A stretch of 64,000 bases of DNA, taken from NCBI GenBank assembly GCA_047495785.1, contig JBLDXI010000042.1, positions 3,100,001 to 3,164,000 on the forward strand, given 5' to 3'. The notes beneath the pieces are model-generated. The model ran no database searches and had not been told where the DNA came from. It saw only the letters and a program-made list of their open reading frames with translations. Shown in pieces: positions 9,807-16,658 of the stretch (position 1 is its first letter; each line of letters starts with the position of its first letter). The position numbers and the translations under genes were made by a program. This DNA comes from Lepidodermella squamata (lineage: Eukaryota > Animalia > Gastrotricha).

Positions 9807-10851
9807 TTAATTACTAGTTCATTTTTTCTGGTGCATGAGATATCCCGAATAGTCAAGAGGAACAAATAAATTAGAGCTTAATACGGTCAATTGCCATTAT
9901 TAAATGTTATAAAACTTGGTCAGTGATATTTAGGACGCCGTTCTTCTAAAATGGTCAGTGTCTGAAATGGTCCAGTGATCATCCATGTGATTATTTAAAT
10001 ATTAAATAGCCAGAATAGCCAGAAAAACAAGGACGATTGACCTGAATAATAAGCTCGCAAATACATGATGAGCATTTTGGCAATATCTAGTGTTCATATA
10101 ACGTCTACTATAATTGAATATCTGGCCCTCTGTCTTAGCAAATTCAATGTCACGAGTATATCACTAGTTCGAGACATTGTGATTCATTTGATGATAATCT
10201 GACAAGCGAAGTGAATGGAATGATGAGTTCTCGTAACACCGTTCAGGACACGTAAAATATAGCTATAATTCTAAAAAGTCAGATAATTTAGGTTTGCTCT
10301 AACTTGCGGTAAATCTGCTGCGTGAATCCATGCCAGACTGACATCGTATGGTGGTAGTAATAAAATAATATCACAAACATTTAAAATTATGGGATATTGT
10401 GCGTAAACGCATGGGCAGCAAAGCGGTAAAAACTGAACCGGCTAAGTGCAGTAACAGCGGAAACTAAAGCTGTTTGCTAAATAGCTTATAGTCATTCTTA
10501 CAGGAGAGTAAAGCCAGCAAAGAAAATTCTTGGAAAAAGATCCAAACCAGTCTGATGATATTTAATGATATTGATTTTATGAAATCTGCAATAAATCCAT
10601 ATAAAATTCGAGAATCAAACCGAAAATGGTTTTCAGTTACAGATGAATCATCCAAAGTCGAAAATGTCCCAGTTGGGTTCTGGATGTGAATGTTGCATCA
10701 ATGAAAAGTGGGGTTCCGGTGCGAAATCCGAACGTTCTTGCACTAAGCTTTTTCGACTCAAAAATTACTTTTATTAGTAATCATTGTATAAAATTATAAG
10801 TTCCTTGAAATAATCACTGAGAAAGCATATATCATAAGTTCAATTTGCCAG

Positions 10852-11271
10852 TTAATTTTTAGAGTCAAGCATCCAAGCTAAGCAGCGCCAAACAGAGCTT
10901 CTGCTGCGGAATTCTGGTATAGTAGCAGTAGCCCCACAATTGGTGGATGCGTTTTCGTTACTGGTTTCAACAAGTTTTCGCAATGGCTCTGCTCCAACTT
11001 TGCATGGAGCCGCTTGACTTGCGTTGTCCGAGGCTGTTGGAACGACGTTCAAGTGAATATTCTCGGCTTGTTTTACAAGACAAAATGAATTCGGATGAGG
11101 ATTCGTTTCTTTGATACGTTTAACCTAGAAATGAAATGAAGCGGTTATTTTTGCCTAATAGCTGGCAGATAGATATTAACAAACCTGGTGTTCATTTTCG
11201 CTATCACTTTGCCGGCGTTTCTTGGCGACTTTCGGCAGATCAAAGCTCAATGGTTGACTTGCAAGAGCCAT
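10852..11271 (-). CDS. Orphan LxxLL-like microprotein B (119 aa) with NLS
   Basis: Exons 11271-11185 and 11124-10852 with a 60-nt intron. Basic KKRR...KRIK segment; motifs PLRKLVE and VWRCLAWMLD. Confidence 0.62.
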
Positions 11272-12533
11272 TTGTAAGTTCTCAGAAACTGTCATTAAAT
11301 TCTGATAAAATCAGTTTTAGAATTGCGTAAAAGCTGACAAGCAACGTTACCTTTTATACTCCATTTAGCTCTGTCCGATCCAGTAAGGTGACGTTATTGC
11401 GATATATAACAATATCAATGTCTCAATTATCTTGCCTACTGTACATCAGGCCTCTGAAACTGGGCACCGATTGAACCGTAGCATTCATATCGGGCACGTT
11501 TGATTACGGCATGCCGGAAAACCTTGACGCCGTGTCCTTCCGCTGGTCTATTCCCTCAAAATCAAGTACTTTCACGTCTGTACTTCAACAAGTAGTGCTC
11601 CAAAGTTTGTCTAGATAATGCTATTTAAGTTATTAATCATGGAACTTACGACAAAACTTGACGCAACATTTAATTAGCTTTTGTCTTGAACGTCGAAGTG
11701 AGTCACCGGCAGAACTAGCGCACGTTATCTACTAATAACAGCTAATTAAAGCCGCCCGACATAGGGCGCGTGTAAAACGAAGTGTCGCCAGCTTCCGTGG
11801 TGTGGACTCGCACGATCATCACGCGACTTAAATGTCTTCTTGCAATTTAAACCTGAAAATGTGCGTCCGGATAATGAAAAACGCCATGTCGGGTTTTGTT
11901 GGTGACATGGGACATGGGATAGCAGAGATCGCCACTTTAATTGGCTTATCGCATTGCGACACCTCATATGGACATGCCCACCAGACCCTTTTGTTGCATG
12001 CTAATGATCTCCCAAACAAATCAAGTTCGGGGACTTGAAAATGCTATACATGGTTTAATTAATCATTATATAATTAAAAGTCTTTAGGAGGATAGACGTG
12101 GAACGATTCACCTCTAGTCGATACTTGAGACGACAGACTCATTTAAAGAGACAATTGTTTCAGAAAGAGTTTCCACGAAAAAATTCAGTCATTGAGACAA
12201 CAAGTCGTTCGTTTAACCAACTGAATCTCATTGCCTCATTACCATTACTAGGTTCCTCCATCGTGGCTAAAATCAGTTTCAGCTATCATTGCTACCTACA
12301 TGGAAAATGTTTCGACAGCTCCTTGATTTGCTATGGGGATTACAGCTTGTTTCTGCCCGTTATAGAATCTATGTGCTTGTAGCGAGTTCGAATACTTCAT
12401 TTGGATGGTCAGTTTCCGGTCCGCTCAGATCGCATAAAACTACTGGAGCATAGCATTCCAAGTTTTATTCATATTCGCTTCAGAATTTCTACCTCGAATC
12501 AATTTACTCATCTTGGATGGATGTCAGTTCAGC

Positions 12534-14012
12534 TTAATAATCGGTCGGAAATTTTTTTGCCAGACATGCCAAGTTGTAATCAGCATAGGACTTCGGGGTA
12601 AACAGCGACAGGTGTGGGCGATTGGCCTGAAGAGCCCTAGCCAAGTGATTGCGCTCTGATTGGATTTGCAACAAAATGCTCGTTATCTGACCAACTTTCA
12701 CGCTGCGGTCATTGTCTGACACGTAATTGCCATCATTCAACTCGACAGCTGCCTTCAACTTATTTAGAGCGTGGGGCCTTGATTGTCCTAAGCGATAATT
12801 GAATTCAAAACACATACAGCTTGACAATATTATTGCGAAAACCTGTAATGAAAAGTGTCACTAACAGCAACGAAAACTCCCTCGGTGTTGGATGCCAAGC
12901 ATTGAGTACGCTGGCCAGGTGGCAACACTGTTGATAATAGGTCTGTCATATACACAAAATTTGAACTATTGAATAAGGAAAGCTAGGAACTTACTGCAAA
13001 TTCTGGCAAAAACTGTAAAATGATTTCGCCTTTGTGCTGAGATAAGCCGAAAGGTGCAGGCTCTAGGCGGTTAGTTTCTGCAAGAATAATAGGCAGCCAA
13101 AGCTCTGGTTGCTCTAAAGCTATTTCTGATGGCTCGCCAATGCAATCCGCCAGCTTTCGGAGGTAGTTATTCGCAGCTTTTGAACCATGCTCAAAGCTCT
13201 CCATCATCACAGTCCAGCAATCGGTGTCGCTGCACATGTACGTCAGTCTTGCATCGTTCCTAGCATGGGGTAGCTGAAATCGGAAGGTAACATGAACGTA
13301 TGCTTTGAAGGATATAGTTAGGTTACCAATGCCAACGATGCCGACAATTCCAGAGTCGCACTCATCACCTTGTCTCTTATGACTTCAAGTGATATACCTT
13401 CAGGAGAACCACTCTTATATGCAACGGTTGATAGTCTTTCTGGAAGGCTACTGAAGCTGCCATCAGCTGTCCCTTCTCTAAAGAAGTGCTCTGGGAAGTA
13501 TGTATAAGAATGAAATTATGAAAAAATCAGAATGACAGCCTCACCTGAGCCGATATCCATGCATCTCATGAAGCGGCATTTAGGACATGACATTCGAAGG
13601 AACACGCCGGAACCAGTTAGAATGGCGTTACGGCTTGCGACGGCGCATTTGTCGGTACCTGTGGTACAACGAAGTTTAGCAGCCCTGGCAGTCAAGCCAT
13701 GATTAGAAGCGTGTCGTTTGAAAAATTTCTGAAAAACAATGCTCCTGAAGCCATTTATCCTATGCAGTAATGTATAACCTTGCAAGCTTGGCATATCGGA
13801 ACGGATTGAGCTCTCACAGGGAACCGACATACCTATATACGAGTAAGGCATTTCGAAATTAAGTTCGAATTGAATAGTCGAATTGAATAGTTTACCAAAC
13901 AGCTGACGACTTCTGGTCCTATAATAGCTCTGGAACTTCCGGCTGCCTTCTTTCCCATCGAGATAACTTCAGATTTGCTTGCCCGAGGCTCAATGGTTAC
14001 TACATTTGCCAT
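12534..14012 (-). CDS. Divergent nuclear receptor (C4 zinc-finger DBD plus degenerate LBD, 383 aa)
   Basis: Seven exons: 14012-13896, 13832-13779, 13728-13545, 13490-13327, 13273-12995, 12942-12843, 12787-12534; all introns are 50-63 nt and in frame. DBD reads CLVC..CQACKKFFKRH..C..C..CPKCRFMRCMDIG. LBD helix-7/8-like segment LNAWHPTPREFSLLLVTLF. Confidence 0.85.
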
Positions 14013-14910
14013 GGAATATGACTATCGCACTTGGAAAGTTGAAATAGGTAATTTCTTGTAAATAAGTCGTCTAACAAATTCGAGACAATAATTCGCTCAT
14101 ACGGTAGCAGATAGAGCGTGCCGAGATGGGTCTGAAGGGATGTAGGTGAAATCAATTACGATAGCGGACGATTCGCCCACACATGGGTGTGACTTTGTGG
14201 ACATCTGCACGATTGCCCGATCACTACCCTGGGCATTAACTCATTTGTGATCAATTATCAGATAAAAGTTCAAACGCTATTTCAAGCTCTGTTTGTTTAA
14301 TTTGACTTCAATCCGTGCATACGTCAGAGCCGACTCTCATAAATTAGGAATTAACTCGGTCTCAGCTTGAAATAACGTCAGCAGCTCGCGACATCCTTCC
14401 TTGCCACCGACATGCGATAGGTGCGGGTACTTGATAAATTCGGTCAACTTTTGCTCGAGATTTTCCAAAATAAGTAGCTTGCAATTTCAACCATTCGGTT
14501 GATTAATGCCGAACTATAAATTACTCCAAGCCATCCAACAGATATGAGATAACAGTAATAAAGTTAACGCGCTGCCCGAAAATGATATCCGTCTCATGAC
14601 AGAGTAAATGACAGAGTTGGAACAATTGAATTTTGGAACCCGCTAATCTGACTATTTCGGTTCGGCATTCTGACTTGAAATTGCTCTTATTTTGGGCAGT
14701 TCGGTTGATCAGTCCTCAAGGAATCAGCATCCAAGTAATTAGTAATTAGATGGACGAGTGGGCCTGCTGCAAACGCCACTGAAAGCCAACAAGCGCTCTT
14801 TTAAATCGTCAAGTGAATTTAAAACCTCACATCTATGAGTAATTTATTCATGTCACCATGTCACCTTATATAAACGAGAAAATAAAGCAATATACAAGAG
14901 TAAATTCGAG

Positions 14911-15278
14911 TCAACATTTTCCGAGATCTGAAATTTGAAGTCCGAATCCAGCCTGGGCCATCTGGTGTAGGGATTTATAATTCAGAGTTTTCTGACAAGC
15001 TTCAGCATCGTCATAAAGGAGCCAAGCCAAACTTCGAGTTAAAGCGTCTGAATTGCGCTGGTCCATTTTGGGAGCCAGGAAACTTCCGTCGCAAATAGCT
15101 ACACTGTTTCTTCTCAGCTGAAAGTAGAAATAGTAGGTAAATATCCGATTAGAGTGGCTATATAAGTTGCTACCTCAAAGGTACTCGTCTTATGCTGTTG
15201 TAGTCTTCCTACCAACTCCCTTTCCGTGGTCAGCAATGCGGCTAGTGTTATTGAAGGAAGGTTCGTATTGACAGCCAT
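14911..15278 (-). CDS. Orphan LxxLL microprotein D (at least 103 aa; may extend 5')
   Basis: Exons 15278-15174 and 15117-14911 with a 56-nt intron; absent from the ORF track. Motifs PSITLAALLT and ALTRSLAWLLYD. Confidence 0.62.
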
Positions 15279-16150
15279 CTTATTCTCATATAGTAACGGA
15301 CTGGCATTTTCGGGCTCATAGCTGGGTAGATATATACACTTCGAGGTTCGAGACTGGTGACCTTATTTGTAACTTGTGACTACAACCTGTACCGAGCAAA
15401 AAATGTACCATTGTACGATAATGATAAAATAGTGGTCGAAAGACCGGTAAATGTCTTTTGAACTATGTATATGTGCAGTTAAAATCGTTGACGAGAGAAG
15501 TAACATGGTGCCCTAATTCTTGACCTAAAAATAGCAATCATCCCATGCCAGGCATAGTTTTGATGAGATTTACGTTGACAAATCAACGTTTGGGGACATT
15601 CAGTGCCAATGCATCTTGCATGTGATCAATTTTCTCAGTGTCTATGGTCTAGGACTCGTATTAGCCTCGCCCTATTATTGTATTATTGAATCATTTTGAT
15701 CATTATACAGACGTGTTTCACAGAATTGTACGTGAATACAAACTCAATTGACGTAATTGCTTTGAAAAGTGAGACTTTACATTGAGAGAGATGTAAAAGT
15801 GGACCATGGTAAATGGTTGAAGGGGGTATGGCAGACTGCAGGCCTAATCAACGAGGTTGTGGATCTTGGCTGCCACACAAAATTGAACATCAAATCAGTC
15901 ACGGGTTCAGTCACGGGTCGTATATGGAAGAAAAGAATCCCCATCGCTCAGTGTTCCCCACGACGTTATTTTTTATTTGCAAGGGCTGATGTTTCGAACA
16001 ATCGAACGTCGGGGATTTTGGCGAAAATCCTTGAATTGAGTCAGGAATTATAGAGCACAAGAAATCTCATAGCTGTTTTATTTTTGCTCAGGGCACAGTC
16101 AATATCAAACAAATCATTTTTGTTATTGGTTTTTGTTAATTTACGCAGTT

Positions 16151-16658
16151 TCATTGATTAGCGCACGCACTGTGGCGATTTGAGAGGATGGGTAAGCCGT
16201 AAATCGGAATTTGATGCATTTTCCCAGTCTTCGAAGTCACCGGCGCGATGTCTTGCTCAAGGAGCCAGGCCAAACAGTGACTCAGTGCCGTAGTTTTAGA
16301 AATCTGGCCTCCATTTTGGATGGGCAAGTCTTTTGATGGAGTTTCGCTATCCTCGGGTTGACTTGTTACCAAGCGCCTCAACGCATCACTTGAGTTTGAC
16401 GATGCTTGATGCTTTTGAATTTGATTTTCCAAGTACCTGTGGAGAACGTGGTTTGGTCCTAAATCCATTTCCTTGATTGGCTTTTTTAGGGTAACCTGCA
16501 ATTATCAAATAAATTATGAATGAGGCTAGTTAAAGCTTAAGCTGTCAACTAACCTTTTTCTTGAGCCAGATGTACTCTTGGAAAGATGACATGCTTTCTT
16601 TTGAGGAAATTGAATGTTGCTGCTGGATTTGCGCAGTCAAATTTTGTGACGAGATCAT
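16151..16658 (-). CDS. Orphan LxxLL microprotein C (149 aa)
   Basis: Exons 16658-16554 and 16495-16151 with a 58-nt intron. Motifs VLHRYLE, ALRRLVT and ALSHCLAWLLEQ. Confidence 0.65.

Follow-up and report, generated by a model that had tools for sequence, protein, structure and literature searches.

A probable nuclear receptor gene with an enlarged second zinc finger and its many relatives in Lepidodermella squamata

RESULTS

Gene structure and finger spacing

Three exons encoding a nuclear receptor (NR) DNA-binding domain (DBD) are read on the minus strand from position 14012 to 13545 of the window, by which we mean the whole 64-kb stretch of DNA that was analysed. With the frame followed downstream by local assembly, the gene model comprises seven exons, 1149 nt and 383 codons without an internal stop. 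Its six introns are all of the GT..AG type and 50–63 nt long (54, 53, 52 and 55 nt for introns 3–6). The model rests on the sequence and on paralogs; searches were run exon by exon, and the spliced protein was assembled solely to check the frame, stops and Cys spacing. The features are:

13896–14012, minus strand: exon 1, 39 codons from the ATG at 14012, in-frame stop just upstream, donor TTG/GTAAAC
13833–13895, minus strand: intron 1, 63 nt, phase 0, GTAAAC..TATATAG, splitting the first C-x2-C
13779–13832, minus strand: exon 2, 18 codons, V-C followed by an 11-residue loop and C-Q-A-C-K
13729–13778, minus strand: intron 2, 50 nt, phase 0, GTTATA..TTTTTCAG, directly 3′ of the P-box Lys
13545–13728, minus strand: exon 3, KFFKR, linker, finger 2 and CRFMRC...IGS, ending at a GTGAGG donor
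13576–13668, minus strand: finger 2 proper, Cys codons 78, 85, 105 and 108
13597–13626, minus strand: insert in finger 2, A-I-L-T-G-S-G-V-F-L, placed by profile-to-PDB alignment
13327–13490, minus strand: exon 4, hinge region without Cys; CCCAG acceptor, GTAACC donor and frame continuity
12995–13273, minus strand: exon 5, 93 codons, homologous to the helix 3–5 part of NR ligand-binding domains (LBDs)
12843–12942, minus strand: exon 6, motif LNAWxPxPxEFSLL common to paralog LBD exons
12534–12787, minus strand: exon 7, C-terminal part of the putative LBD, stop TAA at 12536–12534

Exon 1 encodes a short N-terminal region whose last residues, S-C-L, contain the first Cys of finger 1, and the four Cys of this finger are codons 38, 41, 53 and 56 of the model. 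Exon 2 gives weak tblastn matches to paralog exons. The linker between the fingers has 21 residues, KFFKR being followed in exon 3 by 16 residues before finger 2, and finger 2 is followed C-terminally by C-R-x3-C. Both zinc modules are present with eight conserved Cys, the four of finger 2 being invariant in the family alignments A1 and A2, and the recognition-helix motif C-x-x-C-K-x-F-F-(K/R)-R is kept across intron 2 as C-Q-A-C-K/K-F-F-K-R. The canonical spacing, C-X2-C-X13-C-X2-C and C-X5-C-X9-C-X2-C, is used as a criterion for recognizing receptors (PMC10497141); here finger 1 has a loop of x11, and finger 2 has x6 and x19.

The first-pass annotation had read a finger 1 of C-x2-C-x11-C-x2-C split by an intron, a P-box CQACKK with an intron immediately after it and a finger 2 of C-x6-C-x19-C-x2-C, and all three readings were borne out, by exons 1 and 2, by the junction of exons 2 and 3, and by exon 3, respectively. 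It had also allowed that different splicing might restore canonical spacing, which cannot apply: the finger-1 loop lies wholly within exon 2 and finger 2 wholly within exon 3, so that alternative splicing cannot alter either spacing. Dependence on the splice model is limited to the first C-x2-C and the K/K junction, and introns at both positions recur in many paralogs. The intron-1 position was inferred in paralogs whose exon begins (cag)/V-C, and paralog exons at the intron-2 position begin (Q)KF(F/Y)xR. The non-canonical spacing of the DBD at 14012–13545 is confirmed as real and not a chance pattern.

The insert in the second finger

Alignment to solved DBDs (NR5A2 and RXR) shows 10 residues cleanly inserted after the ‘K-x-x’ stretch, ahead of the conserved Arg before the third Cys, and the same alignment gives a D-box with one extra residue (six versus five). 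Across the family, the insert carries the motif xxTxSGxVW ahead of the conserved Arg, with the Gly and the Arg invariant. It adjoins the D-box, which mediates DBD dimerization in canonical receptors, and is predicted with low to moderate confidence to form a short β-hairpin. An intron within the x19 loop was considered and rejected, the loop having no usable GT..AG. No description of an enlarged NR second finger was found in the literature searched.

The receptor family in the genome

In the animal's own genome (121 Mb), exon 3 matches 62 places; several dozen of these have E < 0.01, with E values down to 1.5e-10 and identities up to 49%. The first twelve loci read all have C-x6/7-C-x19/20-C-x2-C, and they share the motif L-R-C-x-S-G-T..C ... 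S-G-x-V-W-R-M-x-C-P-x-C-R..K-C. A profile built from 15 copies finds 125 places in the genome, ∼60 of which span the long loop, only two of these with stops. The ∼60 long-loop copies have x6 plus x17–24 and the motif SG.VWR..C..CR..KC, and the positions invariant in the family are the four finger-2 Cys, the Gly, the Arg and the CR..KC motif. Exon 3 of the window scores 81.8 bits against this profile, ranking 13th of the 125. The copies lie in loose clusters, and the contig that carries the window has ten of them, from 2.73 to 3.29 Mb.

Other features of the window copy vary within the family. The finger-1 loop is not fixed, ranging from 11 to 23 residues in the genome paralogs, and the residue after the first P-box Cys is mostly E, with Q, I, L, R, P, S and T also found. 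A search for paralogs with the same spacing, which had been suggested as a check, thus found the enlarged finger 2 in ∼60 copies, with finger-1 loops of varying length. The suggestion of a possible new lineage-specific NR subfamily is supported, in a more precise form. The long second finger is common to ∼60 genes and ∼75 metagenome clusters and is absent from the canonical NRs met by the same profile, whereas the x11 finger 1 and the P-box Gln, on which the suggestion had also drawn, are not subfamily traits.

Some further observations concern receptor genes in this genome (G000) more generally. Pairs of matches to the Pfam zf-C4 profile with identical scores occur in the same order on the contig pairs C25/C26, C15/C105, C28/C33, C49/C26 and C31/C48. 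These pairs are retained haplotigs or recent segmental duplications, and the counts of receptor genes are therefore somewhat inflated. Contig C54 carries, at ∼2.52–2.67 Mb, a dense one-strand tandem array of more than 45 zf-C4 matches, including the loci L014, L015, L019, L021, L022, L024 and L028–L030. Most matches in the array cover only profile positions 10–69, which points to a second, separate large receptor expansion in the genome. In the window itself, four short minus-strand open reading frames flank the receptor gene (16501–16154, 15174–14914, 11124–10855 and 8773–8588). Each encodes L-(A/R)-W-(L/M)-L, a motif resembling the LxxLL of NR co-regulator boxes, and the flanking frame of 51 codons has no other copy in the genome.

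Relatives in metagenomes

The 15-copy profile was also run against 1.84 billion representative proteins, giving 93 matches at E ≤ 0.001, of which ∼75 have x6 plus x17–25. Twenty of the matches were looked up, and every one is an unnamed protein predicted from metagenomes assembled at ENA or in Logan. Their finger-1 loops are mostly of 14 residues, with a subgroup at 11. One relative, P0005, is encoded by an intronless gene of 387 residues on a 17-kb contig (L055; ENA ERZ27333047, contig k141_1163760), where its neighbours are ordinary animal genes, one Patched-like and one for a lipocalin. P0005 is rich in runs of Asn, Asp and Ser, and its identity to any part of the L. squamata genome does not exceed 53%, which indicates that it comes from another species. 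A second protein, P0001, is separated from the paralog L038 by almost no distance in the tree, so that a close relative of this animal is also represented in the metagenome data.

The window gene itself has no ortholog among the protein matches, where the best identity is ∼42% over the DBD. Exon 3 found no relative in the JGI metagenome contigs, a word-index search of proteins with P0005 as the query gave nothing beyond P0005, and phmmer of exons 5–7 of the window against 63 metagenome LBDs of the family gave no match.

Homology of the DNA- and ligand-binding domains

Taken alone, exon 3 scores 14.3 bits (E = 0.059) against Pfam zf-C4 (PF00105), compared with a cut-off of 21.1. That cut-off is passed by relatives whose DBD is in one piece, namely the paralogs L034 (36.3 bits), L032 (28.3) and L042 (22.5) and the metagenome proteins P0024 (38.0) and P0005 (24.3). 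Features from ESM-Atlas place exon 3 with zf-C4 clusters at 0.79–0.82, which we take as a lead only. An AlphaFold model of the relative P0003, made with 44 sequences, has a pLDDT of 77.6 and shows two canonical helices, with a short hairpin of lower confidence in the insert. When this model was submitted to Foldseek, the 50 PDB matches listed were all NR DBDs or receptors containing one, with TM scores by target of 0.6–0.83 for isolated domains. AlphaFold on exon 3 of the window alone (15 sequences) gave a pLDDT of 52, too low for claims about the fold.

Pfam gave nothing on the LBD exons of the window taken singly. Exons 5 and 6 align with paralog exons in which the signature L-P-G-F..L...D of LBDs is present, as is the motif L-N-A-W-N-P..E-(F/Y)-S-L-L. 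Profile A3, made from exon 5 and five paralogs, matches the LBDs of Rev-erb beta and alpha, ROR gamma and LXR alpha, that is, of NR1D, NR1F and NR1H, with a best E of 3.8e-5; a paralog LBD exon alone gives weak matches to LXR and EcR. Among metagenome relatives, P0057 (27.4 bits) and P0009 (28.5 bits) pass the Hormone_recep cut-off (PF00104; 23.5). Taken together with the DBD evidence, the homology of the LBD exons leads to the conclusion that the gene encodes a DBD plus a putative NR1-like LBD. A DBD-only receptor of the Knirps (NR0A) type was also considered; such receptors have no LBD, whereas exons 5 and 6 here are homologous to paralog LBD exons.

Condition of the window copy and alternative readings

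The window copy is a fast-evolving member of the family. In a quick DBD tree it sits on a branch of 1.01, compared with a median of 0.48. In its DBD, none of the eight Cys has been lost, and K-F-F-K-R is present together with both invariant residues, Gly and Arg; the departures from the family are a Leu for Trp, R-C for K-C and a terminal G-S for G-M. In the LBD signature, A-D-C-I-G-E-P replaces PGF, with three extra residues. Exon 5 has two weak relatives in the animal's own genome, and for exon 7 no relative was detected there.

A search for sequencing runs that cover the locus found one DNA run and no RNA run. Over 5,801 letters, the DNA run gives contigs of two haplotypes and no joints. 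The listed exonic differences between the haplotypes are five synonymous changes, one missense change (N325D) and one three-base change (K378F), and no indel in the coding sequence is among them. The excess of synonymous changes among these differences gives a hint of purifying selection. Over positions 10800–16600 of the window, the contigs of the run differ from the assembly at ∼2–3% of positions in places, and the depth alternates between ∼35–40 and ∼80; both observations indicate that the sequenced animal was a heterozygous diploid.

We consider it likely that the seven exons form an apparently intact gene whose product is a nuclear receptor with one DBD, a member of a large, fast-evolving, lineage-specific subfamily. 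The most serious competitor is that this particular copy is decaying or has been neofunctionalized and does not bind DNA or ligand normally, in which case it would be a recently formed pseudogene or would regulate by protein contact only. The long terminal branch would fit such a history, as would the changes of Trp to Leu and GM to GS in the DBD, the loss of PGF with three added residues in the LBD, an exon 7 that lacks a relative and the search for sequencing runs, in which no RNA run covered the locus. Against this, the eight Cys, KFFKR and both invariant residues (Gly and Arg) have all been retained, the reading frame is intact over seven exons with clean splice sites, the DBD stands 13th of 125 against the family profile, and the listed exonic polymorphisms are mostly synonymous, with no coding indel listed between the haplotypes. 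We regard decay or neofunctionalization of this kind as unlikely.

Two other readings would change the gene model itself. The odd spacing might be the product of a wrong model, the true transcript restoring C-x13-C and C-x5-C-x9-C, and it is fair to this reading that the model was built from the sequence and paralogs only. Both loops, however, lie in single exons without a usable internal GT..AG, and dozens of paralogs and metagenome proteins share x6 plus x17–24, several of them intronless or with a one-exon DBD, which makes an error of this sort very improbable. The gene might instead be an NR7-type receptor with two DBDs, the second of them canonical and overlooked, as could be expected from the closeness of the family DBD to the first DBD of two-DBD receptors. 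Yet the family profile finds one DBD only in the 64-kb window, on which basis a second DBD in the gene was rejected; exon 4, without Cys, begins 54 nt after exon 3, and in the full-length metagenome relatives a single DBD precedes the LBD. A missed second DBD is, in our estimate, extremely improbable.

DISCUSSION

Proposed mechanism

As an apparently intact single-DBD receptor, the protein would most likely still be a zinc-dependent, sequence-specific transcription factor. Its recognition helix keeps C-x-A-C-K-x-F-F-x-R behind a first finger loop of variable length, and its second zinc module is enlarged by a 6-residue D-box and a conserved insert of at least 10 residues (xSGxVWR) before the third Cys. 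The Glu position of the P-box is base-contacting, and the residue found there, Gln in the window copy and Glu in most relatives, would tune the choice of half-site; since this residue varies across the family, a diversified half-site choice is suggested. The predicted hairpin by the D-box would change contacts between two DBDs or with the DNA backbone. The invariant Gly, the near-invariant Trp-Arg and the position by the D-box suggest that it is probably a structured hairpin, through which dimer geometry would change or further contacts with the backbone would be made. The data establish the anatomy of the sequence, the existence of the family, the fold of one relative as an NR DBD and the homology of the LBD. 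Zinc binding, DNA binding and expression are inferred, as is the altered DNA specificity or dimerization that the first-pass annotation had proposed; the helix residues K-x-F-F-K-R are retained, and the insert lies next to the D-box.

In the most far-reaching interpretation, the family would be an undescribed NR subfamily, so far seen only in this animal and in metagenome eukaryotes, which would derive from the first DBD of two-DBD receptors and whose conserved hairpin by the D-box would provide a new dimer or DNA-backbone interface, allowing response-element geometries used by no canonical receptor. This combination of claims we put forward tentatively, as somewhat short of an even chance.

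The NR DBD is among the most conserved modules of animal transcription factors, and its finger spacing serves as a search criterion for receptors (PMC10497141); surveys based on spacing would miss a whole receptor branch. An insert carried by ∼60 genes and by metagenome relatives amounts to a natural experiment on rebuilding the dimerization face of the DBD. An effect of the insert on half-site spacing or on the choice of partner, should there be one, would help to explain how targets are diversified in a lineage-specific receptor expansion.

Comparison with known receptors

The closest known counterpart is the first DBD of the two-DBD receptors (2DBD-NR or NR7), whose P-box is CEACKK (Wu and LoVerde, PMC10497141, PMC1810520). 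These receptors appear in the tail of the large protein search, where they are matched via their first DBD (CEACKK then FFLRN). The likeness extends to a C-(E/Q)-A-C-K-K P-box followed by FF(L)RN, to a CP.CR..KC tail and, in some matches of this type (P0070, P0084 and P0088), to a 6-residue D-box of the (S/R)GT type. P0088 and P0070 combine this D-box with a normal x9 loop, and the second finger of P0084 resembles that of the window copy almost residue for residue, minus the 10-residue insert. At the P-box, the window copy has QACKK and many family members EACK(K/R), compared with EACKK in the 2DBD first DBD. There are also differences: the window gene has one DBD rather than two in tandem before the LBD, the first DBDs of 2DBD-NRs are without the 10-residue insert (x9–x11), and their finger 1 is x13, as against x11 in the window gene and x14 in most family members.

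Within the genome, the best match to the family profile outside the family comes from L007, a 2DBD receptor whose first DBD scores 42.3 bits; canonical DBDs reach 34.1 bits at most, and the second DBD of L007 scores 27.2. A quick tree of 55 columns, poorly resolved and comparing the family with unnamed DBD sequences, joins the family and the 2DBD first DBDs at an SH-aLRT of 92, sets the canonical DBDs and the 2DBD second DBD outside, and places the window copy with its contig neighbours at an SH-aLRT of 87. We hypothesize that the family may descend from a 2DBD ancestor. A further two-DBD receptor in the genome, L010 (G000:C2:2590623-2593838), is a 598-codon open reading frame with a canonical DBD (CEGCKGFY) after a heavily remodelled module, which begins with Q-K-F-Y-W-R-N-R and in which C-R-T-C-R-Y-F-R-C is preceded by a very long loop; this first DBD resembles the enlarged-finger family.

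Among receptors of single lineages, the ‘divergent NRs’ of flatworms and molluscs (PMC8363021) are similar in being lineage-specific, in fitting no numbered group and in arising by independent duplications within one lineage, with P-boxes such as CEACKSFFKR and CEACKAFFQQ. They are described with canonical spacing, however, whereas here finger 2 is enlarged and the expansion is far larger (∼60 copies). The supplementary NRs of nematodes (PMC10938818) offer a parallel in evolutionary mode, with dozens to hundreds of clustered, fast-evolving receptors, variable P-boxes and very divergent LBDs. Compared with the nematode set by its description, the enlarged-finger family appears to be an independent expansion, with an LBD exon profile closest to NR1 (Rev-erb, ROR and LXR). 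The Rfam SL1 model, tried as a rapid indicator of a nematode genome, gave no match among the 50 of about 31,600 candidates scored, but its controls were silent too, and we give the result no weight.

Departures from the canonical finger are themselves on record: the only exceptions listed in the papers searched (PMC10497141, PMC8363021) are the CHC2 finger of flatworm HR96b and the atypical P-boxes of the ‘divergent NRs’. HR96b of parasitic flatworms is a precedent in that it combines a lineage-wide remodelling of the second finger with extra introns in the DBD. There, a zinc ligand has changed from Cys to His and the x9 loop is kept (PMC8363021), whereas in the family described here the four Cys are kept and it is the loop that has been lengthened.
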